64,000 nt of DNA from Rebecca billardiae RCC1528. Its lineage: Eukaryota; Protista; Haptophyta. A program made the translations under genes and the position numbers. The notes beneath the pieces were generated by a model, which made no database searches, had not been told where the DNA came from, and saw only the letters and a program-made list of their open reading frames with translations. Shown one piece after another: positions 21,535-54,199 of the stretch. Within the stretch, counting starts at the first letter, position 1, and each line of letters starts with the position of its first letter. The stretch lies in NCBI GenBank assembly GCA_965240325.2, contig OZ251250.1, forward strand, positions 372,001 through 436,000. Direction: 5' to 3'.

Positions 21535-22763
21535 CCGGCGCTACGACTTCGTTCGCCATCGCCGATCATCAATCAAATATATCGGCCGCCATAATACGGT
21601 CATTGATGATGAGCGACCCGCGGCGCGGACCGCCGTCAGGGCCGGACGCCTCGCGGCGGGTCCGGGACCGCGGCCCGCGCGGGTCACGCCTCACGGGTGC
21701 CCGGTGGGCCGGCGCCGCGGCGCGGCGCCGCCGGCGGTACTAGAGGCTGCCGCGTGGCACCGCGCGCGCGGGGCCCCGCGGTCCGGCCCGAGCTGCGGAG
21801 TGAGCAGCAGGCTACGACGGACTGTAAGACGCCAGACCGCGGGCCATATTATATCGAACTGACACTGGCACTGCGGCGTCGACGCGTCGTTGCCAGTAGA
21901 GTAGTCCGAAGTCACGGTCGCCGGGCCGAGTGCCCGCCGGGAGTGGCCGCTAGGCGCTATATATCACTTATAATATATGATGTCTTATGTCGTCGCGTCT
22001 TATATCCGAGCGAGAGTGGGGCACAGAGTGGCGGCGCCGGTGCCAGTGAGACTGAGAGTACTCCGCGCCGTGTAGTACTAGTAGGCGTAGGGCCGCCTCA
22101 GCCCGCTCAGTACTAGTAGGGCGCCCGTGAGGCCCAGTGGCACGGTGGCGGCCCGCGCGGAGCAGTGCTGCCATCATCATCCGAATCAGTTACTAATCTG
22201 TATCACTATCAGTGCCGGAGTCACACTAGTCCCGGAGTGAGACTACTCTGACGGACTGTAGTGCGCCATCACTCAATCAGCCCACCATCGGACTGGCTGA
22301 CCGCGGGCGCGCTCGGTGAGAGCGGAGTGCGAGGGCCGGGCGAGACGGAGTAGACGCGGGGCCTGCGAGGCGACAGGCGCGCTCGGGGAGAGCAGAGTGC
22401 GAGGGCGAGAGGCAGCGGCCGGCCGGCCCCCGCCACCGCCTCGCGCACCGCGGCGTACTGCGGCGGCACGCGCACGCACGCGGTCCCCGGTCCGAGCCCA
22501 AGGGCTCCTGACGAGTTCCACGCGTCGCGGTCGCGCCGGCGCGTCACCGGCGCGAGTCAGTCAAGGGCCTTGCCCCATCATAGTGCAATTTCGTCTGCGT
22601 GCTGTATATTCGTCACGAATACCCTACTATGGGGGTACGGAGCTAGTGATCATCTTTATTTATTGCCTAATTGTCTGCAGTGCGCCCTCTAGCTAGTGGC
22701 TTCCGCGGGAACCCGCCGTGACGGCGTGCCCGCCGTGCCGCCCGGTCACTCGATGAACGATGA

Positions 22764-22992
<229 letters not shown>

Positions 22993-23013
22993 AGCTTATT
23001 AAGAGTAGTCATC

Positions 23014-26000
23014 TGTCAAAGAATCGCCAATCTACAGTGATTCCAATTTCCAATCCAACATTTTACTCGCAGTCACACAGTGGCGGCGCGACCGCTGCGG
23101 CGGCGCTCGCACAAAATCCTCCAAAATCAACCTGAACCTCATCCTAAAATACAGCAGGACAGCATGGCTGGCGGCGGCATCTGGAAGCATTCTAGATGCT
23201 TCCGAAACTCGTGAACGAAACATGAGCCGATCACTCAAAACACGCTGAGCTCACCACCGCAAAAAAGAGCCGAAGCTCGTCCACGACCTCGCGACCGTCA
23301 AGCCTCGAGACGCGTTCCCTGACATGCTAGCACGGTGCTGGGAGAACTTGGGCAAGGATGGAGACGACGAGAACAGCGGCAAGGACGTGAACGGCCATCA
23401 GCCCGCCCCAGTTGCTCCCCTCATTGGGTTGAAGCCAGGCGTGGCAGAGCGCGCGGCAATGCCGCGCGGCTCATCGGCGATCGCGCGCAAGCGCACGCCA
23501 GACTACCTCGCCGCTGCCCTGAGGGGCATGCAGGCTGAGAAGAACCGGCAAGGCGAGAAGCTCACGCTTCTCCGCAAGCCCATCTCCAGCGCTTACGGGC
23601 CTGGCAACACCGCTGACCTGTACTCAGGCAGCCACGCGTCGAGTGCGATCGCACCGCGTGTTGACCGGATTCATGCCGAGTCAATCAAGGATCACCTTGA
23701 GGAGGAGGTTCGCGCACAGCGCGGTGAGGAGGAGCGTTGCCGCTCGCATCCCCCGCCATCGCGCCACTCCATCCGCACGCACGTCGTTGCGCAGGGGATC
23801 TCAACAACTACCGCCCGGGACTTGGCGCCCGCAAGCGCGGCTGAGCGCGAGGCCGAGTGCCCGCAGCTCAAGGAGTGCCTTGCTGCCTCCGAGTCATCGA
23901 ACGAGGTCACCAAGCGTTCCGGGGCAGATGCAGCGCTCGACGCTGCTGCCGCCGATGCCGCTTTGACCGTCGAGGCCCTCGAGCCTGCCGACGCTGCTCC
24001 GCGTGCTGGCCATCTGGCCGCCGCCTGTGACAGCCGCAGGTCGTGCCACCGCCGCAGTCAGTCTGCAGCCTCGCGCGCATGACACTGTGTCTGAGTCTGA
24101 CCGATCGAACGATGACATTAGCACCGATGAGTGCGACTCTAACGACCCGTATGGTCTGGCAGAGCAAACTATGCTCCAAGATGCTACGACGCGTGACTCT
24201 GTCACAGCGAGCTCAAGCATTAAGTCAGCGGCCGCATTTATTGTTGATGCGCCTGATGACCCAAACATATACGTTTACCCCAAAACTACAAGCCTCACGA
24301 TGGCTTCCGAAGCCGAGCTGCTCGCCACGAGCGACACAAGCAGCCGCGAGATGACCGCCGCAGAGACGGCAGAGTCCTCGTCTGGCACGTATCGACTTGC
24401 GTCGAACGTAGGAAGCGCATACGATGCAGGGGGGGCATCATACACCTGCTTGACGGCAAAGCCGCAGCAAAACCAAGTTGGCGAGCGCGACGCGCGTGCG
24501 CATGCATCAGCTGCGTCAGCCATCACAACGCCACACTCTTGCAAGGAAGAGTATTCCGCCGAAGCTGCCGCGGATGCACATGCATCACCGCTGGACAGAA
24601 CGAGCGTGAAGAAGCCCAAAGAAGGCACCACAGCCTCGACGAGGGTCACTCCTCGCTCGAAGGTAGAGCGCGAATCGCCACAGAGCGCGCGCGACACATC
24701 GACCAATGCACTTGAGTCGAAGAAACGTGACTGGATAGTCATCGAAGGAGGAGTCACAGACTCTAATCCAACCAAGAAGGAACGTGTGTTCATGGCACGC
24801 GAATCATCGGCAGGAGTGGATACACCCGCCACACACAAGCTGACACAGTCGGCTCTGAAATCCAAGCGCGCGGTACACAGCGCGATACGGGATGCACTCG
24901 CAGAAGTGAGCACCTACTACAAGGGCAAATCCTCAGATGTCACACCTGACATAATGGAGCCCAAGGATAGCAAGCTATCCGGCTTTCAACTCATTGCCAA
25001 AGACAAATGGGTGAAAGACGCAGCCAAAATCGATCCATACAAGGCTGACAACGCTGACGCCAACAAGATCGGATCGGTCTACGATCGATCTGCGGCAGCG
25101 ATATTCAAGCAGCTGAAGGACTCTATCGAGCCTCAGTTATTCGCCTATCTGGAATCGAAGCTGCACATCAGCGATCCGACCAAGAACTACTTGGATCTGG
25201 CGCTGCTGCTACAGATATTTGAGCGCGAGCTCAAGATCACAACTATGTCCGAACTCAGGGATGAATTCCTGAAGTTATACCCGACAAAGGTGTCGCCCAT
25301 TGGCGCATCGGACATTATCAAGAAATCCGTCGAGCAAGTCCGCTCATCTCGATATAGGAATCTGGACGATGCTACGATGTTGGTCTTCAAGCTGTATAAC
25401 AGCATGCACGACCATCCCCAAGTCTACGAGTCAGTTATCTCGCACTTCGGAGCGCTCACGCCCGAGCAATGTGTGGATAACACTGACCAGATAATGGCCC
25501 AGATGGAAGATGCCTACAAACGGCACGGCTCAATGAAGCTACTCCATCAGAACAATACCAAGGGGAGAGAGACCGAAAATTATTCCAAGATACGCCAAAA
25601 TGCCGATTATCAGCAAGGCACGCGGCGACGCGGTGACTTTGAGGGCGCCGAAGTCTTCGCCGCTCAGGCCCAAAAGGCTCCAGCCAATGGCGAGAGCGGG
25701 CCGAATAACTCGGACACCGGCAAACGGTGCACTCACTGTGGTCTCAAGAACCATACTGCCCAGCAGTGTTGGAAGCTCCACCCAGAGCTACGCCCCAAGG
25801 CCAACAATTACAACAAAGGCAAAAACAAGGGAGCCAACAAATTTCCCAAGGAGCGTATCCATTTCCTGGATATTCCTGCTCCGGATGCCTATGATTGACT
25901 ATCAAGGCAGGGCATGACCCAATAACAAGGTCCAAAATCAAGGCCAAAGAGTGAACATTTGGTGCAAATAAGCCCAGGACTGACTCGGGTTACCCAAAAC

Positions 26001-26476
26001 CGTCACACGGAAGTCCCAGCACATGACCCGTATCCTGGCATTGGCAACCATTACTGACTCCAATTCACTCATGCACACAGATGCACAAACAATACCAAGC
26101 CCAAAATCACTCATAATCCAAGCTTAGTCCTCACAGACGAGCGCATATTGGATTGAGGGGGGGTGTCAAAGGAATCGCCAATCTACAGTGATTTCCAATT
26201 TCCAATCCAACATTTTACTCGCAGTCACACAGTGGCGGCGCGACCGCTGCGGCGGCGCTCGCACAAAATCCTCCAAAATCAACCTGAACCTCATCCTAAA
26301 ATACAGCAGGACAGCATGGCTGGCGGCGGCATCTGGAAGCATTCTAGATGCTTCCGAAACTCGTGAACGAAACATGAGCCGATCACTCAAAACACGCTGA
26401 GCTCACCACCGCAAAAAAGAGCCGAAGCTCGTCCACGACCTCGCGACCGTCAAGCCTCGAGACGCGTTCCCTGACA
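23014..26476 (+). mobile_element. Copia-like LTR retroelement encoding gag only (non-autonomous)
   Basis: LTRs 23014-23324 and 26164-26476 (TGTCA...TGACA) differ only by two single-base indels; polypurine tract GATTGAGGGGGGG at 26151-26163; gag zinc knuckle present; no protease, integrase or RT. Confidence 0.9.
23324..25898 (+). CDS. gag: Gag-like protein split into two overlapping frames (23324-24082 and 24003-25898)
   Basis: C-terminal CTHCGLKNHTAQQCWKLHPELRP is a Copia-type CCHC knuckle; apparent frameshift near 24025. Confidence 0.75.
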
Positions 26477-27513
26477 CGGCTCCGGGGGGGAATGAAAAGC
26501 GAGGGAGTCGGCAAAAAGACGAACGAAAGAGGGGAGCACGAAGAAGATGACCGACAAAGAAAGACGACAGAAAAACGAGCACGGTACGCGACGCGCAACC
26601 TCCGGGTACAGTCGCCCGGGTCAACAACAAAGACACAAAAAGAGCCTCACAAAGCCACAGCAGCAAAGAAGGGCTCACCGCCCACAAAAGACGGAGTCTC
26701 TACGAAGCCACAGAGCAGACGAGCACGCAGGGTGGAACACCTGGGAAAGACCAGGCGGGGAGAGAAAAAAACCTCGACAACAAATCCGTCAGAACACTGG
26801 ACGGGACTACAGCCCCTCGCGGGGTGTCCCACAGGAGACTTACGGTTTGTCCGAGGGAATGAAGAGCCCGAAACGACTGAGCTAAATCGGTTCGCGCGAA
26901 CCGATTTAGCTCAGTCGTTTCGGGCTCTTCATTCCCTCGGACACAACCGTAAAGTCACCTGTTCGAATCCAGCGACCGACACGCAGGCATAAGAACTCTT
27001 GGCCCTTCACGCGAAGCGCTTTCGACCTTCACCTCGCGAGAGCCTCGCGGCTCCGGGGGGGAATGAAAAGCGAGGGAGTCGGCAAAAAGACGAACGAAAG
27101 AGGGGAGCACGAAGAAGATGACCGACAAAGAAAGACGACAGAAAAACGAGCACGGTACGCGACGCGCAACCTCCGGGTACAGTCGCCCGGGTCAACAACA
27201 AAGACACAAAAAGAGCCTCACAAAGCCACAGCAGCAAAGAAGGGCTCACCGCCCACAAAAGACGGAGTCTCTACGAAGCCACAGAGCAGACGAGCACGCA
27301 GGGTGGAACACCTGGGAAAGACCAGGCGGGGAGAGAAAAACCTCGACAACAAATCCGTCAGAACACTGGACGGGACTACAGCCCCTCGCGGGGTGTCCCA
27401 CAGGAGACTTACGGTTATGTCCGAGGGAATGAAGAGCCCGAAACGACTGAGCTAAATCGGTTCGCGCGAACCGATTTAGCTCAGTCGTTTCGGGCTCTTC
27501 ATTCCCTCGGACA
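26477..27513. repeat. Tandem repeat, period about 570 bp (1.8 copies), each copy ending in a perfect 96-bp palindrome
   Basis: 26477-26943 is nearly identical to 27048-27513; palindromes at 26848-26943 and 27418-27513. Confidence 0.92.
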
Positions 27514-27791
27514 TCATCGAATGAAGAAAATGTCTTCGTCAGCAACTTGATCGAATATCGATACCGATATAATTAGTAATAAGCCTTGCGGCCTCAGACC
27601 GAGTCAGCCCCTCAGGCGGCCCGCACGTTCAGAATGAAGACGAAGTGTCGTTCATTCAGGACCGGGGGCCGGGCCGCCCTGCTGGCCTGCGGTCGTCGCG
27701 ACACTGAAGGGCGTCGACGCCGAGGGCACGCGCCGACCGCGCCGCCTAAGCAGCAGGTTCCGGCTATAAGGTTCGGCGCGCCTGACTTAGA

Positions 27792-29828
27792 TCAGGCGCG
27801 CGATGGCACCCGTCCGCCCGCCACGGCGCCGGGGGCCAGCGCGTCACCCCGGAAGAAGGCGTCGATCTTGCCTTGCTGTTGGTACGCCTGCCGCCCGCGG
27901 TGCGGCTGCTGGTGTCGATGGCGGTGCGCGCCGGCGGCTGTGCCACCCGAGGCTCTCACCGCCGAGCCCGCGGAGACGGAGGCGCCGGGCGCGTGTGGAC
28001 GGCTGCCCATGCCCGTGCCTGCGCGCGCCGACACGCCCGCGGCGGCAAAGAAGGAGCCGACGCCTGCCGCCTCGCGCCCGCCTGGCGCGTGCACGCGCGT
28101 CCGAACCGGCGAGGTGCTCGCGCGCGCGAGCGCGGCCGCCTCGCGCTGCTCCTCGGCGGCAGCCCAGCCCGAGCCCGCGCCGTGCGGGTCGAGGGCAGCG
28201 GCCGGGAGCGGATCGGCGCGGGGCGGTGGCGGCACGTGGTGGGGCAGGGCGCGCGCGAGCGAGTCTCCAGACGCGGCCTCGCTCGGGCCGAGGTGTGCGC
28301 GCTTTCTCCGCGCGGCAGGATCGTCGGCGCTCAGCGCGGCGCCATGCAGCGCGAACGCGCCCGGCGCGCTAAACGGCCGCTTGGCCCCACCCGGCCCCAG
28401 GCGTGCGCCCAGCTGGAACGGCGGCGGCTGCGGCGCGCGCGGCGCGCGAGGCGCAGCCAGCGTGCGATTGCGGCGCTCGGCGTCGGCGCCCATGGCGCCC
28501 ATGGCGCCCATGGCGCCCATGCCGTCGAACAACGCGTCGGGCAGCGTGGGGATCGCGCCGTCGAGCCGCGCCGGGACGGGCACCGGCGGCGCGACCGCGA
28601 CGAGCGCTGGCGCCGCCGCGCCGCCGCCGCCGCCGCCGCGCGTGCCATCGGGCTCGGCCTCGGCGCCCGTGTCAGGCTGCTCCAAGGAGCACACGCCGTC
28701 GGCGCGCGCCGCGTCGGCCGCCTCGACGGCCGCCGCGGGCCTGGGCGGCGCGAGGCGGTGCGCAGGCCGGGCGACTGCGCGGCCGGGCGGCGCCAGGAGC
28801 CGGCGCGCCGGCGGGCGCGCCGGCGCATCCGCGCGGCCCTCGCCTGCATCCGCGCGAGTCGACGAGGCAGCCGCCGGTCGCGCGGGCGCGCGCGCCGCGC
28901 CGTCCGCGACGCCGCCGTGGTCGGCGCGGCGCGAGGCGGGCGCGTGCTCGGCCACGTCGGGCTGGGACGGCCTCGCGGCGAGCTGCGCTGGGCGCTGCTC
29001 GCCCTGCTGCCGCGCCAGCTCGCGCTTGTGCCGCTCCATCCGCGCGTCCGTCTGCCGCGCGGCCAGCTGCTCGAGCGCACAGCAGCTGCGCCTGTACCGC
29101 TCCGTGCACCGCGCCAGCTCGGGCTGCAGCACCGCCGCGCGGCGTCGCAGCTCGGCGAGCAGGGCGGCGTGGAGCGTGGCGCGGTCTGCCGGCGGGAGCG
29201 CGCCCACGCGCGCGCCGCTGAGCTCCGCGGCCAGCCGGTCGTACCCGCCGGGACAGTCGATCAGCTGCCGCGCGCGCTTGAGCTCGAGCGCGAGCGCGGC
29301 TCGCTCCGCCTCGCGCTTGCTGGCGGCGAGCGCCTCGTGCGCGTCCTGGAGCTGCGCGTGTGTGCGCGCGAGCTTCTCCGTCGCCAGCGCGAGCTCGGCG
29401 CGCGCCGCGTCCACGTGCGCGCGCTCGTCGAGCACGCGGCGCTGCTCGCACTCGAGCTCGCTCCGCAGCTGCGCGTTCAGCTGCGCGCGCACGCTCGCGC
29501 GCGCGCCCGAGCCGGCCACGTCCTCGCCACGGAAGGACCAGCTGTACGTCGACCAGAGCGCATGTGAGCCCAGGCGTGCGGCTGCCGAGCACGCCTTGCA
29601 GCCACAGCCGCCGCCTGTCTCACGCGCGGCGGCGCATGCCGCGTGCAGCGCGCGGCCGCACGGCGCCACTGCGAGCTGGCCGCCGCCCAGCGGCCGCAAG
29701 CAGCACGCGCACAGCCACAGCTCGACCGGCTCGCTGTCGAGCTGCCCGTCCGATGGCTCGCGCGCCGAATCATCGGCGCTTTCGTCGTCGGAAGACGCAG
29801 CCTCCGCGTACATGTCCGGCTCATCCAT
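27792..29828 (-). CDS. TRAIP-like protein: N-terminal degenerate RING, coiled coil, C-terminal PIP box
   Basis: CACC...APCGRALHAAC...CKAC, long heptad region, and QGKIDAFF near the C-terminus. Confidence 0.6.
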   Translation of the reverse strand: MDEPDMYAEAASSDDESADDSAREPSDGQLDSEPVELWLCACCLRPLGGGQLAVAPCGRALHAACAAARETGGGCGCKACSAAARLGSHALWSTYSWSFRGEDVAGSGARASVRAQLNAQLRSELECEQRRVLDERAHVDAARAELALATEKLARTHAQLQDAHEALAASKREAERAALALELKRARQLIDCPGGYDRLAAELSGARVGALPPADRATLHAALLAELRRRAAVLQPELARCTERYRRSCCALEQLAARQTDARMERHKRELARQQGEQRPAQLAARPSQPDVAEHAPASRRADHGGVADGAARAPARPAAASSTRADAGEGRADAPARPPARRLLAPPGRAVARPAHRLAPPRPAAAVEAADAARADGVCSLEQPDTGAEAEPDGTRGGGGGGAAAPALVAVAPPVPVPARLDGAIPTLPDALFDGMGAMGAMGAMGADAERRNRTLAAPRAPRAPQPPPFQLGARLGPGGAKRPFSAPGAFALHGAALSADDPAARRKRAHLGPSEAASGDSLARALPHHVPPPPRADPLPAAALDPHGAGSGWAAAEEQREAAALARASTSPVRTRVHAPGGREAAGVGSFFAAAGVSARAGTGMGSRPHAPGASVSAGSAVRASGGTAAGAHRHRHQQPHRGRQAYQQQGKIDAFFRGDALAPGAVAGGRVPSRA

Positions 29829-33429: not shown

Positions 33430-34615
33430 ATGGATGGCAAGATCAAGCACGTGTGCTCGGATGGGTCGGAGGTGATGATCGATGCGCACCCAAAGATCAA
33501 GAACCACTCCGTACTCGCGCTCCGCCAGTGGACCACGATGGACACGGGCGGGCAGAACCGCGGCGACAGCACGGTGCTGCTGCACGTGACGCACTCCAAC
33601 CTCGCGCGCCACTTCCACGAGCTGCGGCTCGACATGCACATGACCATCGAGTCGCTGAAGGACAAGCTGCGCGCCCATGTGGGCACGGGCTCGGCGCACA
33701 TGTGGCTCACGCTCATCGACGACAGCAATCAGATGGTGCGCGGCCGCGCGCAACTCATCGGGCGCCACTGCGCTACGCCCACCCGCCTGCCGCTGAGCCC
33801 GCGTGTGTCCGCCGCCCCGGCTGCGCCCGGCAGATTGCCGACCTGGATGACGACTCGCGCATGCTCGGCTACTACTCGCCCTACGATGGCTGCACCATCC
33901 ATGTGCGCGCGCGCGCGCGCGCGCCGTGCGCGCCCGGCCCTCGCCGCCGCTGAGCCGCGACGCCCGCGCACCGCCCACGCCGCCTCGCGCGCAGATCACG
34001 GACCTGGACCCGCACTCGATCGCCGCGAACGGCGGGCTGGACGACGTCTCGCTCGTCCAGAAGTACGAGATCTCGGAGGAGAACTACATGAAGCGCGAGG
34101 ACAACTTTCGAAAGTTCCGCGCGCAGAAGCTCGCAAAGGACCCGAGCTGGTCGATCGCCAAGGAGATGAAGATGCGCGAGTACGCGCGGATGAAGAAGCT
34201 CGACCCGTCGTGGGAGCCGCCGCCCGAGCCGGAGAAGAAGATCATCGACGACCCCGAGTACCAGGCCGCCGAGGCCGCGGCGTTCAGCGTGGGGCAGCGC
34301 TGCCAGGTGAAGGTGGGCGAGCGGCGCGGCGAGGTGCGGTACGTGGGCAAGGTCAACGGCATCGGGCTGGGCTACTGGGTGGGCGTGTGCTACGACGAGC
34401 CGGTGGGGAGGAACGACGGCTCGGTCAAAGGGTTCCGGTTCTTCGAGTGCCCCGAAAACTACGGCGCCTTCGTCCGGCCGGACAACCTGGAGGTGGGCGA
34501 CTTCCCCGAGCGCGGCCTGTCTGACCTCGAGTCGGACGAGGACGAACTCGAAGAGGACGGCGCGGCCGACGCCGGCGCGACCGCGCGCACAGTCGAAGCG
34601 GACGGGTCAGAATGA
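33430..34615 (+). CDS. TBCB: Tubulin-folding cofactor B; 3 exons (33430-33735, 33834-33902, 33995-34615)
   Basis: Ubiquitin-like domain (VTHSNL...LKDKL...MLGYYSP), KYEISEENY, and CAP-Gly WVGVCYDEPVGRNDGSVKG. Confidence 0.93.
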
Positions 34616-35819: not shown

Positions 35820-36486
35820 CTACTCCATCAACGCCTCCGCACCCTCGCAGATCGAGTTGTCGTTCTTCGTCGCGACGATCAGACCGACGATCAGACCGTA
35901 CAGCCCAAGCGCCGAGGCGAACGACCAGATGAGCACCATGCCGATGTAGAGCTTGGGCTGCCGCGCGGAATCGCGCACGCCAATGTCACCGCACATGCCG
36001 ATGGACAGGCCCGACGCAAGGTTGCTCAGGCCGACCGCGAGCCCCGCGCCAAAGTGCGCATACCTGCGCGGACGTCGTGGATGCACGCGCGGGCGTCGCG
36101 GCGCGCGGACCCGCGGTCAGTCGGCCGCCAGGGCGGCAGCGCGCGCGCGCGCCGGAGATAATTGCGCGCGTGAGGCGGGTGCGCACGCGCGCGCACCCGC
36201 TGAACAGCGAGTAGTTGTCGACGTCGACCGAGTTGGCGATGATCACGGCGATGATCAGGCCGTAGATACCGCAGACTCCGGCCATGATCACCGGCAGCAT
36301 GCTCTTGATCACCATCTCCGGCTGCACGCGGTGCCGCGGGAGCTTGGCCATCGCCGCCATGCCGACCGCACTCTTCCACGTGCCGTAGGCGGCGCCCATG
36401 TTGCCGAAGACGAGCGCGGACGCCGCGCCGAGGAAGCCAAAGTACGAGGCATAGCTCGGGCAGTACACCAGCGCGGCTGACGACAT
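35820..36486 (-). CDS. V-type ATPase proteolipid subunit c paralog lacking the TM4 Glu; 2 exons (36486-36197, 36063-35820)
   Basis: [60 protein letters not shown]...[23 protein letters not shown]. Confidence 0.9.
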
Positions 36487-37094
36487 TGCGCCTGCGTGCG
36501 TCTGGGGACGACGATGGAGCTTCTGCCGACTCTGAGCACTGCTGCACTCCTTCGGGGCTCGGCGAGGAGCAGGCTCTTCTGGCCCGTTCACTGCGCATCG
36601 GGGTCGGCCCCGAGGCATCCGGACTCAACCGAAATGAGCCCGGACAGTCCGGATGAGCTTCAACAACTTGTCATCATCAAAGCCGCACCTAAATAATAAT
36701 CAGAGCAGACCCAAATCACGCCGGCAGATTGAGGCTGCTTTGCTATGGCGCAGCGTCCCAGACTTGAAGATTGTATTCACGCAGTTCGCGAGCCCATTAT
36801 GCGAATACTCATGCGAAGATGCGTTTCTATCTACGAATACATAACGAGCGCCCTCGCCCCTGTCGCCAGCTCCACACGCGGCGAGGCTCAAAGCAGGGCG
36901 CTGCGCGGGGGCCGCCCCAACTTGCAGGCGCGCCTGGGTGCTCTCGCGCTCGCTGTGCGCGAGGCACGCGCCGCCGGTGCGTGTGCAGCCCCGCAGGTGG
37001 CGCTCTACGCCCCGCCACTGCCACCAGCCGCGCGCACAAGCCGCGCGCCACGCGGCCTCCTGCCTACGCCGGCGGGTACCGCGCGCTGCGCGCC

Positions 37095-45732: not shown

Positions 45733-48700
45733 TCACACACGAGAATCGTCGCTGCTGTTCGACACCGGCACCGGGCGGTTGTACTGGCGAGTGGACTCGG
45801 GCGGCGGCCGCGGACGATGCGGAGACGCGCGCCGTTGCCGGCTGGCCGCGCCGAAGAATCCGTTGGCCGCGCCGAAGAATCCGGCGGCCGGTGCGGCCAC
45901 GTCAGCGCCCTGTGCAGCCGGCGCCGGCGCCGGACGCGGCTGCGCGGTGCGCGTGTCGCGCTTCGTGAGATTGGCAAACGACTTCGAGATCGAGCCTGCG
46001 AACGAGCCGAGGCGGGACTGGCGGCGCATCGCGGCACGCCGCTCCTTCTCCGCCAGGTCGGCGTAGAACTCCTCGTCGTCTTTCTGCGAGGCAGACGGGC
46101 GCGAGCGCGCGCGCAAAGGGGGGCGTGGCGTCAGCGGGTGCAGTGCGCTTGGAGGCGGCTCCCTCGGCGGGCGAGCGCCCTCGGCAGACGGGGCCGTGCG
46201 GCAGCGCGGCCCGCACCTTGAGCTTGCGGTAGTATCCCGCGATGGCCAACACGATGCACACCAGGAGGCAGCAGGTGAAGAAGGAGCTGACGGCGATGAT
46301 GGAGACCTGGTGACACAGCGACGCGCGCGCGCGCGAACGAGCCGTCAGAGGCGTGCGGCCGGTGCGCAGCGCCAGCCGAGCGCGCGCGCGCGCCGCGCGG
46401 CGCCGCGCGCGCACCTGGCCTGCAAACGGGATGTTGGCCGCTGAGGGCCCCAGCAGGCTGTCGTCAGCCCGCGGGGACGGAGCCGGCAGAGGAGGCGGGG
46501 AGGGCGGCGGCGGGCTGAGCGGCAAGGGCGGCGGCGGCGGCGGCGGCGGACTCGGCGGTGGGCTCGGCGGCGAGGGCGGGTTAGGCGGCGGCGCGGGCGG
46601 CAGAGGCGGCGAGGGTGGAGGCGGCGGCGAAGGCGGCGGCGAAGGCGGCGACGGGCTGGGCGGCGGTGGAGGGCTCGGTGGGGGCGCGGGTGGCGAGGAC
46701 GGCGGTGGCGAGGGTGGCGGCGACGGCGGGCTCGGCGGCGGGCGGCTGGGCGGGCTCGGCGGGACGGGCGGCGGCGAGTAGAAGTCGCACGTGCCGTCGT
46801 TGTACGTGGCGGTCGGGTTGAAGTTGCGCGCGGCCGGTGCCGTGCAGCCGCCGTACGCGCACTGGCCGTTGTCGACGGTCGCGAACGAGTCGAAGTTCTC
46901 CGCGATTGAGTCGGTGCAGCCGGGGAAGTTGAACTCGCACCCGGAGAGCACGGTCGCGGTCGGGTTGAAGTTGGAGGCCGTCGGGTTGGTGCAGCCGACG
47001 TACTGGCAGTTGGCCGACTCGATCGCCGCGTCCGAGCGGTAGTTGACCGCGGCCGTGTCGGTGCAGCCGACGATGAGGAAGACGCACGCCGACGGCGTGT
47101 TGGCGGTCGAGTCGTAGTTGGTCGCGGTCGGCTCGAGGCAGCCGAGGAAGATGCAGCTCGAGAAGTCGAGCTGCGTGACCGACGCGTCGTAGTTGGACGC
47201 GCCGATCACGTTGCACCCGACCACCTCGGGCACGCACGAGCCGTCGTCGTTGGTCGCGGCGGAGAAGTAGTTGGTCGCGGTGGGGTCGGTGCAGCCGGGG
47301 AGGATGCAGCTGCCGTCGTCGGTGGTGGCGCTGGAGGCGAAGTTGTCCGCGCTCGAGTCGGTGCAGCCGGGCACGGGGCACACGCAGCTGCCGTCGTTGG
47401 TCGTGGCGCTCGGGTTGAAGTTGGTGCAGCCCGAGAGCGTGCAGCCCGGGTACACGCAGCTGCCGTCGTCCTGGTTGGCGCCCGAGTCGTAGTTCTGCGC
47501 GGCCACGTCCGTGCAGCCGAGCGCGGGCAGCACGCACGCGCCGTCCGGCGCGTTCGCCGTCGAGTCGTAGTTGAACGCGACCGGGTTCTGGCAGCCGAAG
47601 TAGGCGCAGTTGCCGTCCACGTCCGCCTGCGAGTCGTAGTTGTCCGCCGCCGGATCGAGGCAGCCGACGACCGCGATGTTGACGCAGTTGTTGGAGTCGA
47701 CGGTCGCGCTCGGGTTGTAGTTGCCGGCAAGGGGGTTGAGGCAGCCGGTGAAGACGCACGAGCCGTCGTCCGTGCCGGCGATCGAGTCGTAGTTGTCCGC
47801 GGCCGAGTCGGTGCAGCCGAGCACGTTCACGAACAAGCACGCAGCTGCGTCGTTCACCGTCGCCGTCGAGTCGTAGTTGTCGGCGAGCGAGAGGCGGCAG
47901 CCCGAGTATTGGCACGAGCCGTCGTTCGTGTCCGCCGTCGAGCGGTAGCTGATCGAGGTCGAGTCGGTGCAGCCGAACTTGGGGTAGATGCAGCTGCCGT
48001 CGTTCGTGTTGGCGGTCGAGTCGTAGTTGCGCGCAAAGGTGAGCGTGCAGCCCCGGAAGACGCAGCTGCCGTCGTCGACGGTCGCGAAGGACTCATAGTT
48101 CAGCGCGGCGGGGTTCGGGCAGCCGGGGATGGCGCCCGTGCACGAGCCGTCGTTCACGGTCGCGGCGGACAGGTAGTTGTCCGCCTCCGGGATCGTGCAG
48201 CCGCTGATGACGCACGAGCCGTCGTCCACGGTCGCGGCCGACTCGTAGTTGTCCGCGCGCGTGTCGAAGCAGCCGCGGATGAGGAAGAAGCAGCTGCCGT
48301 CGTTCACCGTGGCCAGCGAGTCGTAGTTGTCCGCGTTCGAGTTCTTGCAGCCGGAGAGGAAGCACGAGCCGTCGTCCACCGCCGCGTCCGAGTTGTAGTT
48401 GGTCGCGAGCGGGTCGGTGCAGCCGCCGAGCGGCGAGATGCACGAGCCGTCGTCCGTGTTTGCCGTCGAGTCGAAGTTGGTCGCGGTCGAGTCGACGCAG
48501 CCGAAGTGGCGGTAGCGGCAGCTGCCCTCCTGGAGCGTGTTGGCCACCGGGTTGAAGTTGATCGCCGACGTGTCCGTGCAGCCCAGGATGCTGTACACGC
48601 AGACGGTGTTGCCCTGCGAAGTCGCGTTCGAGTTGTAGTTGCGCGCGAGCGAGTCGAGGCAGCCGATGATGTCGTACTCGCAGCTGCCGTCGTCCACGGT

Positions 48701-51700
48701 GGCGCGCGGGTCCGTGTTCGTGGCGTTGGCCGCGGTGCAGCCGAGGAACTGGCAGCTGCCGTCGTCGACGGTCGCCGTCGCGTCAAAGTTGTCGGCCTCA
48801 AAGTCGGTGCAGCCCGGCACGGGGCACGCGGTCGCGCCGTAGGTGATCGCCAGCTCGTTGTTGGTGCACGTCTGCTGCAGCGCGCGCTCCGCGAGCGCGC
48901 GCCGGCCGCGCCGAAGGTCGAACGCGCCGGGGCCCTGCCACGTGTCGATGGCGAACTCGTTGGCGGCGACCAGCTCGTCCGAGACTCGGCGCATGTCGAT
49001 CACGTTGGGCCCGTTGGCGGCGGTGAGGCCCGATGCGTCGCGCACCTCGACGATGAGGTCGTACACGTGCGTCGTGTTCGACAGCACCGAGACCACCTTC
49101 TCCTGCTGCGCCGGGTTGTCCACGCAAACGTCCGCGATGGTGCGCAGCACGGCGTCCTCGACGATGGTGCGGCTCGTGTACGGCCCCAGCAGCTGCACCA
49201 TCCGGCCGAGCCACTCGCCGATCACGATGGACGCGCGCACGACGTGGATCGCCTTGAGGTCGCCGCTGATGTACTGGGTGAGCGGCTTGTACGTCGAGAC
49301 GTCGACGAGCTGCGAGTAGTCGAAGCACGGCCACAGCAGCAGCTGCGCCGCGTCCTCCGTGAGGCTGTACGGCGCGTCCAGCATCCGCATGTACAGCGTC
49401 GTCAGCGGCGAGACCACCTTGCCCGTGATCGGCCCCGTGAGCTTGAAGGCGAGCGACCGGCCGCTGATGGTGTCGCGGCACTGCGAGGACGCGTCCACGA
49501 CCAGCTTCGCATTGCGGTCGGTGTACAGCGCGTCGTACGCGCCGTTGAGCGCGCTGACCGCCTGGCCGACGCGCGTGCCGTCGGGGCGCACCGCCTCGAC
49601 CAGGCAGCCGCGCCGCTGCGCGACCACCTGCACCACGCCGCGCGCGTACACAAACTGGCAGTCGGACGGGCTCTGGATGGTCGCCTTGTCGTCGTAGTTG
49701 ATCGCGTTCGTGTTCATGCACCCCTTGTACAGGCACTTGAGGTAGCGCGTCGCACCCGAGACGTAGTTGGCCGCGCTCGAGTCCTGGCAGCCGTACACCG
49801 GCGCGACGCACGTGCCGTCGTCGACCGTGGCGAGCGGCGCAAAGTTGACCGCGTTCACGTCCGTGCAGCCGGCGATGAGGCAGGTGGACAGCCCGAACTC
49901 CGTGTTGGCGCGCGAGTTGTAGTTGGTCGCCGCCGGGTTGGTGCAGCCAAACACCTTCGCCACGCAGCTGCCGTCGTCCACGTTCGCGGTCGGGTCGTAG
50001 TTGAGCGAGTTCCTCCCCGTGCAGCCGGGGTACGCCGCGAGACACCCGCCGCTGTCCACCGTCGCCGCCGAGCGGTAGTTGAGCGCGGTCGAGTCGGTGC
50101 AGCCGGTGACGGGGAAGATGCAGCTGCCGTCGTCCACGGTCGCCGTCGAGTCGTAGTTGAGCGCGCGCGTGGCGAGGCAGCCCAGGTGGCGGTAGATGCA
50201 CGAGTTGTCATCCGTGTTCGCGGCCGAGATGTAGTTGAGCGCGGTCGAGTCGGTGCAGCCGTCGACGGGGAAGACGCAGCTGTTGTCGTCGACCGTCGCG
50301 GAGCAGTCGTAGTTGATGGCGCGCGTGGCCATGCAGCCGAGCACCGAGTACACGCACGTGGCCTCGATGTTGGCGTCCGAGCGGTAGTTGATCGCGGTCG
50401 AGTCGATGCAGCCCGGGACGGGCAGCGTGCACGAGCCGGGGCGCAGCGTCGTCGCGAGCGGGTCGTAGTTGAGCGCACCCGGGTTGGTGCAGCCCTCGAC
50501 GAGCACGATGCACGTGCTCGGCACCGCCTCCGTGTTGGCGCGCGAGTCGTAGTTGGTCGCCTGCGGGTTGGTGCAGCCGACGCGCGCCAGGACGCACGGC
50601 GTGGCCGCCGTCTGGATGGTTGCGTTCGGGTTGAAGTTGAGCGCGCTCGGGTTGCGGCAGCCCTCGACGCGCAGGATGCAGTCGAGCGCGTTGTTCGACC
50701 CCTCCGAGTTGTAGTTGAGCGCGTCCGGGTTGTTGCAGCCGCGGTCGGTCACGAACTGGCACGAGCCGTCGTACACGGTCGCGAGCGAGTTGTAGTTGGT
50801 CGCGCTCGTCGAGGTGCAGCCGAGGATCGCGTACTCGCAGTCGGCGCCCTCGACGGCGTCCGAGACGTAGTTGAGCGCGAGCGAGTCCTGGCAGCCGCGC
50901 TTCACAAACGTGCAGTTGCCGTCGTTGGCGGTCGAGTAGGAGACGTAGTTGATGGCGCTCGGCACGTTGCAGCCGAAGATGACGCACTGGCCGTTGTCGA
51001 CGGTCGCGAGCGGGTCGAAGTTGATCGCGCGCGAGTCCGTGCAGCCCGGGCGCGGGAACGAGCACGAGCCGGCGAGGAAGCGGTTGGCCGTCGAGTCGTA
51101 GTTGGTCGCGCCCGTGGACGTGCAGCCGGGGTAGAGGCAGCTGCCGTCGTCCTGCGACTTGTCGGAGGCGTAGTTGGCGGCGGTGTTGTCGGTGCAGCCC
51201 CTGCAGCTGCTCAGGTCGCAGTCGGCCGCGGAGTTCATCACCGTCGCCTCCGAGTTGTAGTTGCACGCCGTCGAGATCGTGCAGCCCACCACCTGGTACA
51301 CGCACGAGCCCTCGTCCGTGTCCGCCGCCGAGTCGTAGTTGACGGCGGTCGAGTCCGTGCAGCCGAGCGTGTACGGCAGGCAGCCGGCGTAGTCGGTGGC
51401 GGTCGAGTCGTAGTCGGATGCCCACGAGTCCGTGCAGCCCGGGTGCGAGTACAGGCAGACGATGTCGTCGGGCTGGATGTTGGCGTCCGAGCGGAAGTTG
51501 GTGGCGAGCGAGTCGAGGCAGCCGGGCACGGCGTACACGCAGCACAGGTTGGGGCAGCCGCCGGCGAGCGAGTCGTAGTTGAGGGCGAGGGGGTCGATGC
51601 AGCCGACGCGCGGCGGCGGCGAGGAGGGCGGCGGCGGGCTGGGAGGCGGCGACGGCGGGGGTGTTGGCGGGGGGCTCGGCGGGCTCGGCGGCGGAGACGG

Positions 51701-53990
51701 CGGCGGCGAAGGCGGCGCGGCTGGCGGCGATGGCGGTGGCTCGCGAGGACGGTCGGATGGCAGCGGCGGGCTGGGCGGCGGGGATGGCGGCGGTGGCGGC
51801 GGGCTTGGCGGCGGGCTCGGCGGTGGCGATGGCGGCGACGATGGCGGCGGGCTGGGCGGCGGGCTGGGCGGCGGGCTGGGCGGCGGGCTCGGTGGTGGTG
51901 GCGGAGGCGGGCTGGGCGGCGGCGGGCTCGGCGGAGGGGACGGGGGCGGCGACGGCGGCGGGCTCGGCGGCGGGCTCGGCGGCGGGCTCGGCGGCGGGCT
52001 CGGCGGCGGGCTCGGCGGCGGCGGTGGAGGCGGGCTCGGCGGCGGGCTCGGCGGCGGGCTGGGCGGCGGGCTCGGCGGCGGGCTCGGCGGCGGGCTCGGC
52101 GGTGGGCTGGGCGGCGGGCTGGGCGGCGGGCTGGGCGGCGGGCTCGGCGGTGGGCTGGGCGGCGGGCTGGGCGGCGGGCTGGGCGGCGGGCTGGGCGGCG
52201 GGCTGGGCGGCGGGCTGGGCGGCGGCGGTGGCGGCGGGCTGGGCGGCGGGCTGGGCGGCGGGCTGGGCGGCGGGCTGGGCGGCGGGCTGGGCGGCGGGCT
52301 CGGCGGCGGGCTCGGCGGAGGCGACGGCGGCGGGCTGGGCGGCGGGCTGGGCGGCGGGCTCGGTGGTGGTGGCGGCGGCGGGCTGGGCGGCGGCGGGCTC
52401 GGCGGGGGTGACGGAGGCGGCGACGGCGGCGGCGACGGCGGTGGTGGCGGCGGCGGGCTCGGCGGCGGAGGGCTCGGCGGCGGTGAAGGCGGTGGCGGCG
52501 GCGGCGAGCTCGGCGGCGGTGATGGCGGCGGCGGCGGCGGCGAGCTCGGCGGCGGGCTGGGCGGCGGCGGCGGCGGCGAGCTGGGAGGCGGCGACGGAGG
52601 CGGCGGCGGCGGCGAGCTCGGTGGCGGGCTCGGCGGCGGCGGCGGCGGCGAGCTTGGTGGCGGGCTCGGTGGCGGCGGCGGCGGCGAGCTGGGCGGTGGG
52701 CTCGGCGGCGGCGGCGGCGGCGAGCTCGGTGGCGGGCTTGGCGGTGGCGGCGGCGGCGAGCTGGGAGGCGGCGACGGCGGCGGCGGCGGCGGCGAGCTCG
52801 GTGGCGGGCTCGGCGGCGGCGGCGGCGGCGAGCTTGGTGGCGGGCTCGGTGGCGGCGGCGGCGGCGAGCTGGGCGGTGGGCTCGGCGGCGGCGGCGGCGG
52901 CGAGCTCGGTGGCGGGCTTGGCGGTGGCGGCGGCGGCGAGCTGGGAGGCGGCGACGGCGGCGGCGGCGGCGGCGAGCTCGGTGGCGGCAATGGCGGCGGC
53001 GTCGGCGGCGGGCTCGGCGGCGGCGTCGGCGGCGGCGGCGGCGGCGGGCTCGGTGGCGGCAATGGCGGCGGCGGCAGCGATGGCGGCGGGCTCGGAGGTG
53101 GCGCTGGCGGCGGCGGCGGCGGCGGGCTCGGCGGTGGTGGCGATGGCGGTGGGCTCGGCGGCGGCGTCGGCGGTGGTGGCGGTGGTGGACTTGGCACTGA
53201 CGGTGGTGGAAGCGATGGTGGCGGGCTCGGCGGCGGCGCTGGCGGCGGCGGCGGCGGCGGGCTCGGTGGTGGTGGCGAGGGCGGCGGGCTCGGCGGTGGC
53301 GCCGGCGGCGGCGGTGGCGGCGGGTTCGGCGGTGGTGGCGATGGCGGCGGGCTCGGCGGTGGCGCCGGCGGCGGAGGTGGCGGCGGGTTCGGCGGTGGTG
53401 GCGATGGCGGCGGGCTCGGCGGTGGCGCCGGCGGCGGCGGTGGCGGCGGGTTCGGCGGTGGTGGCGATGGCGGCGGGCTCGGCGGTGGCGACGGCGGCGG
53501 CGGTGGCGGCGGCGACTCAGATTCGAGCAGTGCACGCGGCAAGGGCGTGTTGATGGAGTCGGCTTCGTCGTGGGCGTCCACAATGACGCCCTGTGCTCGA
53601 TGCGCATCGCCCGTGGAGAACCGGCTGGGTAGGCGGCGTTTGTGCGGCGGATTCGTCGCGAGCATGGTCGCGAGCATGGTCGCACACGTGGGAGGTGCGG
53701 ACGGGGCGACGTGGAAGGCGCGCGCTGCACGTCAGATGATGCACGGAGGGCCCCGGATGCGCCTCCCCGCGTGCCACCCCGGCACGGACGACCCCGATGT
53801 GCGATCAATCCGCCAGCGCGGACGCAGGCGGGGCACGCGAGCTCGCACACCTGTTAATGACCGCCGAGTTGCGACTCACGGATGATCGCGCCGCCGACTC
53901 GAACTCACGGGGAGACGACCCATCGATGTGCGCGCCAGAGCCGCGTGCAGCACCGAGCGCAGCGACGAGCACAAGCAGCGCCCTGACCAT
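45733..53990 (-). CDS. Giant type I membrane protein with extensin-like Ser-Pro(n) stalk, about 52 GCTDxxAxNY...DDGSC repeats, TM helix and cytoplasmic tail; proposed exons 53990-53851, 53624-46415, 46306-46217, 46083-45733
   Basis: 2591-aa ORF plus an upstream signal-peptide exon (MVRALLVLVAALGAARG) and phase-compatible GT-AG junctions; the first acceptor is the least certain. Confidence 0.88.
51610..53515 (-). repeat. Coding minisatellite encoding SPPP / SPPPSSPPPPPP units
   Basis: 12-bp and 30-bp GGC-rich tandem units. Confidence 0.95.
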
Positions 53991-54199
53991 TGTCGTCGAC
54001 GCTTGCTGTGGGGCGCAACGCACAGCACACCCCCGGCAACCAGGAGGCGTTGGGCGCACCACCAAGGGATCCGACGCGTCCCTCACTGCGCATCCCCACC
54101 CCCGCGATTGTCTCAAGATGTTGGCCTCGTTTGTTACGGTCGGCGCTGGCGCCTGCTACGGGCGCGCCGGTCGCCTCGCTGGGTCATAAATAGATCACA

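Follow-up and report, generated by a model that had tools for sequence, protein, structure and literature searches.

In textbook accounts, the V-ATPase rotor cannot do without the glutamate in TM4 of subunit c, and a proteolipid gene in the 64,000-nt stretch of DNA analyzed here (hereafter the window) has a serine codon in its place. Is this a genuine and maintained gene, and what might a c-like protein do without its carboxylate? The gene lies on the minus strand and consists of two exons (36486..36197 and 36063..35820) that encode a product of 177 aa. Exon 1 (36197..36486) begins with the ATG at 36486-36484 and specifies residues 1-96 and two bases of Gly97, which comprise the lumenal N-terminus, TM1, cytosolic loop 1, TM2, and lumenal loop 2. 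It is followed by a phase 2 intron of 133 nt (36064..36196, with GT at 36196 and AG at 36064) and by exon 2 (35820..36063), which supplies the last base of Gly97 and residues 98-177 (TM3, cytosolic loop 3, TM4, and a lumenal C-terminal tail with a conserved Cys) and ends with the stop codon TAG at 35822-35820. Each exon separately matches PF00137 in Pfam above the gathering score (E-values of 2.8e-12 and 3.4e-15), and no second proteolipid gene was found in the 64-kb window. An in-frame upstream ATG is present at 36618 on the minus strand, 132 nt before 36486, and would add 44 Arg/Pro-rich residues (36487-36618); because orthologs and their transcripts begin at the position of the ATG at 36486, with MS(S/A)A, this segment is probably 5' UTR. 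The window has about 70% G+C. In places its base composition departs from this value: G+C falls to 0.54-0.60 with strong AT skew at 22000-28000 and rises to 0.82 with GC skew of up to +0.33 at 46000-54000.

In phmmer alignments against the plant, pig, cattle, human, and yeast c chains of solved V-ATPases, the codon of Ser147 (TCG, 35915..35913, minus strand) falls exactly on the Glu of the motif FAE(A/V)LGLYG, a site that we take to be E137 of yeast Vma3 and E139 of mammalian c. The sequence-only reading of this DNA, which had placed a replacement of Glu by Ser in TM4 near 35914, was therefore correct on this point. To reach a Glu codon, whether GAA or GAG, TCG would need two substitutions. 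The same reading had used the two-substitution distance from GAG to argue that a base-call error was unlikely, and the argument holds, with TCG also present in contigs of all three other runs that cover the site. Its further claim, that TM2 contains no compensating Glu of the c'' type, extends beyond this protein. No Asp or Glu occurs in the four helix cores of any of the 26 clade members examined (26/26), so a c''-type compensating carboxylate is absent and this explanation for the missing residue was rejected. The protein is thus unable to bind a proton by the canonical mechanism.

To place this protein among its relatives, we carried out a word search of database proteins with the exon 1 part of the read-through ORF, and the window protein was searched exon by exon. 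The word search returned about 40 clusters at 62-95% identity, after which identity dropped sharply to ordinary c subunits. All of these clusters have in common GTWKSA, the loop insert KLPRH[K/R]VQ, VCGI(F/Y)G in TM2, and LIWSF(G/A)SALG in TM4. In a motif count over all fetched database proteins, WSF[A/G]SALGLYGLI was found in 121 distinct proteins; Ser was present in every GTW-type protein and Glu in none, whereas the other TM4 matches had Glu in 78 of 78 cases. Named members of the Ser type come from Diacronema lutheri (KAG8457321.1), Pavlovales sp. CCMP2436 (KAJ1637373.1), Prymnesium parvum, Chrysochromulina tobinii (KOO22355.1), and C. parva. Both haptophyte classes are therefore represented, one by Diacronema and Pavlovales CCMP2436 and the other by Prymnesium and Chrysochromulina. 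The remaining members are mostly from marine metagenome and metatranscriptome collections, including an abundant environmental member (P0037) that was found solely on marine metagenome contigs; one environmental member occurs on contigs from 262 indexed blocks of the collection. The window protein is 93-95% identical to the Pavlovales members and identical to none of them, from which we conclude that the DNA comes from a further member of Pavlovales.

Canonical, Glu-bearing c subunits were also identified in the same group, namely in D. lutheri (KAG8463350.1), Rebecca sp. RCC1486, and P. parvum (KAL1528067.1), and both D. lutheri and P. parvum have a Ser-type and a Glu-type protein each. Since the same species keep a normal Glu-bearing c, the Ser form adds to the usual proteolipid set and does not replace any part of it. 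In a previous EST study of E. huxleyi, a c'' homolog was described along with two c/c' clusters, which "aligned poorly" and were interpreted as paralogs; the Glu was not remarked on (PMC2784329). A deeper branch was observed as well (P0047, P0229, and P0232, from Logan and Tara assemblies), whose members are extended at the N-terminus by about 35-95 residues of signal-like or lumenal character. P0047 has Ser at the Glu site, P0232 has Asn (WSFANALG), and this pair has a different and shorter loop-1 insert. With Ser in 121 proteins and Asn in P0232, no ortholog keeps Glu, and judging from these alignments the conserved trait is the absent carboxylate together with the Trp-Ser turn.

Genes that have lost an essential residue often turn out to be pseudogenes, and this prior is all that speaks for the view that the gene is an artifact or a decaying copy, that is, a sequencing or assembly error or a neutrally drifting pseudogene. 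Contigs from the runs X1 and X3 (only guessed to be RNA), which are 92-95% alike to the window gene, cover both exons and skip the intron, in X3 exactly at the predicted junction. A contig from X2, an oligo-dT marine metatranscriptome, matches exon 1 at 98% and continues across the same junction, and other X2 contigs cover the Ser codon. This codon, TCG and not a Glu codon, is unchanged in every run covering the site. The listed differences in X1 and X3 all fall at third codon positions, and the G>C at 35917 in X2 corresponds to an Ala-to-Gly replacement that typifies prymnesiophytes. For D. lutheri, a 973-nt contig (L002) has an uninterrupted CDS, and its genomic counterpart (L001) has an intron at the same codon as the window gene, as does Pavlovales CCMP2436. 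The open reading frame and splice sites, which the sequence-only reading had considered intact, are thus confirmed by relatives. Because the RNA matches came from relatives and from marine metatranscriptomes with small word shares, we infer from orthologs that the window gene is expressed.

Evidence of selection points in the same direction. Nei-Gojobori counts were taken per exon and then summed as counts, giving dN/dS of 0.091 at a dS of 0.52 against D. lutheri and of 0.090 at a dS of 0.73 against CCMP2436. Replacements relative to both Pavlovales orthologs are confined to the termini, the lumenal loop, and the first turn of TM3, and TM1, TM2, and TM4 are identical. Sequencing or assembly error was ruled out because independent assemblies and contigs agree on the codon and the splice junction, and a pseudogene because of the dN/dS of 0.09 and the third-position differences. 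Together with the intact frame and splice sites and the Ser that is invariant in 121 proteins, these observations leave an artifact or a decaying copy with a negligible probability.

The age of the family was examined with a maximum-likelihood tree (LG+C20, 58 rows), in which the ortholog P0121 stood in for the window protein; for both tree and fold, the orthologs P0121 and P0001 (93-94% identical) were used in place of the window product. All carboxylate-less proteins fall on one side of a branch with a support of 100/99. The stem of this clade is long (1.23 + 0.62 changes per column) and its inner branches are short, and Pavlovales and prymnesiophyte members split inside the clade as their classes do. 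When the GTW, KSA, loop-insert, and WSFxS columns were dropped, the support was still 100/98, which rules out that the clade is held together by its odd residues alone; in this tree, the deeper pair P0047/P0232 is sister to the rest of the clade. The stem attaches near haptophyte canonical c at a weak node (54/10). The duplication dates back to the haptophyte crown or earlier. Proteins from different haptophyte classes are 74% identical in the case of the Ser type and 84% identical in that of canonical c. Together with the dN/dS of 0.09, the comparisons show that strong purifying selection was already acting on the family before Pavlovophyceae and Prymnesiophyceae diverged and has persisted since, and the Glu-less clade proved conserved in just the sense in which it had been proposed for checking.

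The genomic neighborhood was also compared. A CAP-Gly/ubiquitin-like gene (tubulin-folding-cofactor-B-like) is found at 33430-34519 on the plus strand of the window, and the same neighbor (75-90% protein identity) adjoins the D. lutheri ortholog on the other side and strand. The neighbor common to both shows that the two loci are orthologous, and its changed side and strand show a local inversion between the two Pavlovales genomes.

We then asked where the Ser-type protein departs from canonical c, counting as clade-specific those sites with a residue conserved in at least 90% of the clade and one conserved in at least 80% of Glu-type c, without overlap between the two (D. lutheri numbering, which equals that of the window). 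These are A28G, A37W, and G40A at the cytosolic end of TM1; G47A, V48K, and a PRH(K/R)V insert in cytosolic loop 1; L72C in TM2; G111N and I120M in TM3; A128D and Q131R in cytosolic loop 3; and V137I, L143W, I144S, E147S, and L160I in TM4. They cluster in a patch around the proton site (L143W, I144S, E147S) and in both cytosolic loops. The codons of Trp143-Ser144 (TGG TCG, 35922..35927, minus strand) lie one helical turn before residue 147, where canonical c has Leu-Ile, and the pair is invariant in the clade and occurs in no Glu-type sequence. Because residues 143 and 144 share a helix face with 147, the entire outward-facing proton pocket has been rebuilt as Trp/Ser/Ser. According to the alignments, the insert in the window protein is P-R-H-R-V (residues 50-54, 36325..36339, minus strand), flanked by G47A and V48K; it is present in Pavlovales and prymnesiophyte members and in no Glu-type c of the alignment. 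The codon of Trp37 at the cytosolic end of TM1 (36376..36378, minus strand) accounts for GTWKSA versus the canonical GTAKSG.

The degree of conservation differs among segments. Across the helices, the consensus is 63-71% identical to that of canonical c, and no Gly packing position varies. Conservation within the clade peaks in TM4 (0.97). It still reaches 0.92 in loop 1, although the consensus of this loop has 0% identity to canonical c. Cys9 (36460-36462, in YCP of the lumenal N-terminus) and the Cys of the C-terminal tail (about 35847-35849, in ..SICE..) do not vary within the Ser clade and are also common in the canonical c of haptophytes, and a lumenal disulfide tying both termini is possible. 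The AF2 model of P0121 is a four-helix bundle of four long helices (pLDDT 87), and phmmer gave E-values of 7.6e-23 to 2e-19 against plant, mammalian, and yeast c. In Foldseek searches with the AF2 model, the top matches were 7u8o_g, 6o7u_o, and 6xbw_o (TM-score of about 0.8 when normalized by target length); the best were c chains of pig, yeast, bovine, citrus, human, and rat V-ATPase, followed by c'', the E. hirae K ring, and 4bem chain J. Thus, the Ser-type family is an ancient, haptophyte-wide c paralog with a four-helix proteolipid fold in which all membrane carboxylates have been lost. The Glu-less, spliced c-subunit paralog described from the sequence alone stands, as part of an ancient haptophyte-wide family with a remodelled cytosolic face and not as something private to this genome.

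Has such a protein left the V-ATPase altogether? A proteolipid that forms its own oligomer or joins another complex, as a pore, fusion factor, or scaffold (cf. the debate on V0 and "ductin"), would not need a proton site, and the full loss of the carboxylate, the rebuilding of both cytosolic loops, and the long stem of the clade would agree with a pump-independent role of this kind. The signal-like or lumenal N-terminal extensions of the deep relatives suggest functional experimentation, and isolated yeast c-rings conduct as large pores (PMC4838861). However, helices that are 63-71% consensus identical to c, with invariant Gly motifs, are what co-assembly needs and a free-standing bundle needs less, and we consider a role outside the pump unlikely.

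The reading that we favor, although we stop short of calling it probable, is that the Ser-type protein may be a specialized, proton-silent subunit of the V0 rotor ring. A lineage-specific c duplication would have given rise to a copy fitted to a particular ring position, as for fungal c' (Vma11). The remodelled cytosolic loops would form the face meeting subunit d or the ring neighbors, and on the side that moves past subunit a, the Trp-Ser-x-x-Ser patch would take the place of the proton site. Packing against c-type neighbors is still likely because the Gly packing motifs are retained, and a fixed ring position, as for c' and c'', fits because the new conserved loops would sit at interaction interfaces. 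In yeast Vo structures, the cytosolic loops are located where subunit d sits. The cytosolic sections of proteolipids are also said to provide interaction interfaces (Fig. 7 legend of PMC7414715). The five-residue loop insert could equally prevent docking under subunit d.

If the Ser-type protein does occupy the ring, its effect on pumping may be of two kinds. Work by Hirata and colleagues from 1997 reportedly found that the yeast enzyme no longer pumps once the Glu is altered in just one of its ring subunits, be it c, c', or c'', and because each of these residues is individually essential, a silent position may stall a V-type rotor and not re-gear it. On this basis, inhibition is the default expectation. 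The Ser-type protein might then be a negative regulator or brake: with a Glu-less subunit, V0 would be unable to rotate past subunit a, which would yield a locked, leak-proof V0 or turn pumps off in certain compartments or life stages. The conserved Trp and two hydroxyls lie exactly on the face that meets the subunit-a arginine, as a brake would call for. Nevertheless, a core component would better explain the very long and strict conservation (dN/dS of 0.09) and the seemingly constitutive occurrence in many marine metatranscriptome assemblies, and a braking function seems rather improbable to us.

For a proton-silent ring subunit that does permit rotation, a ring with at least one Ser-type subunit would move fewer protons per turn, which would lower H+/ATP and raise the attainable pH gradient. 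It is possible, and we suggest it with due reserve, that the haptophyte V-ATPase rotor contains at least one naturally proton-blind subunit, in which case it would be the first rotary pump of a eukaryote to have a vacancy built into it, running in a lower H+/ATP gear toward a steeper attainable pH gradient. In haptophytes, the V-ATPase has been placed at the coccolith vesicle and at acidic compartments rich in Ca/polyphosphate.

Mixed-subunit gearing of H+/ATP is said to be an old idea, of the Cross and Taiz type, and we know of no eukaryotic example so far. If the Ser-type protein is in the ring, eukaryotic rotary pumps could tune H+/ATP by mixing carrying and non-carrying subunits, and the "complexification by duplication" story of c/c'/c'' would be extended. 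If it is not in the ring, it would be a clear example from nature of a proteolipid that has taken on a job outside the pump and would bear on the disputed pore and fusion functions of V0. In either case, a c paralog devoid of the textbook Glu has been retained in an entire algal phylum, being common to all haptophytes sampled, and purifying selection on it has been strong since before the two classes diverged. Full-text literature searches, whose coverage lacks most subscription journals, yielded no description of a Glu-less eukaryotic c paralog. Coccolithophore papers (among them PMC2784329) treat "V-ATPase c/c'" as one kind of gene, and studies of coccolithophore calcification routinely measure "V-ATPase c/c'" transcripts, unaware that one of two paralogs cannot carry protons. 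A lineage-specific ring paralog is a known type; what appears to be new here is the loss of the defining residue.

Comparison with known systems makes this position clear. Like canonical c (yeast Vma3, human ATP6V0C, plant VHA-c), the Ser-type protein has two PF00137 hairpins and four helices at 55-67% identity, together with the Gly-rich packing motifs and the LGLYGLIV end of TM4, and its closest relatives are c subunits. Unlike canonical c, it lacks the TM4 Glu, has Trp-Ser one turn earlier and GTWKSA for GTAKSG, and carries the five-residue insert in loop 1, A128D/Q131R in loop 3, and a conserved Cys in the C-terminal tail. Subunit c'' (Vma16, ATP6V0B) is also a ring paralog, with sequence and fold matches that are weaker than those of c chains but significant, and its TM4-equivalent carboxylate is dispensable. 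It differs in having an extra, fifth N-terminal helix and an essential Glu on the TM2-equivalent helix, neither of which is found in the 177-aa Ser-type protein, with its four helices and no helix carboxylate.

With regard to origin, a parallel is provided by fungal c' (Vma11) and other lineage-specific duplicates of c. Fungal c' keeps the essential Glu, whereas the haptophyte Ser-type paralog has no carboxylate at all. In other respects they are alike, each being a lineage-restricted copy beside c and c'' with asymmetric divergence and with conserved substitutions at helix sides and cytosolic sections; the Ser type, too, is a monophyletic duplicate alongside canonical c and is under purifying selection. 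Independent c duplications with interface specialization have been reported in at least eight other eukaryotic groups, among which haptophytes are not listed (PMC7414715, describing Finnigan et al. 2012). That article never uses the word glutamate and is silent on whether the listed duplicates keep it.

With regard to effect, a natural rotor ring with a position that lacks an ion-binding carboxylate is found in the F/V-hybrid c-ring of Acetobacterium woodii (4BEM), whose chain J is also among the structural matches of the Ser-type model. The A. woodii hybrid rotor works with one ion-less site, and its four-helix c1 has one ion-less hairpin; it may therefore serve as a precedent for a rotor that works with such a vacancy. 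The mixed A. woodii ring is described in bioRxiv 10.64898/2026.10.01.756066. The A. woodii ring is bacterial, Na+-coupled, and F-type, with one of two hairpins silent, whereas in the eukaryotic, V-type Ser subunit, a putative ring member, both hairpins are silent.
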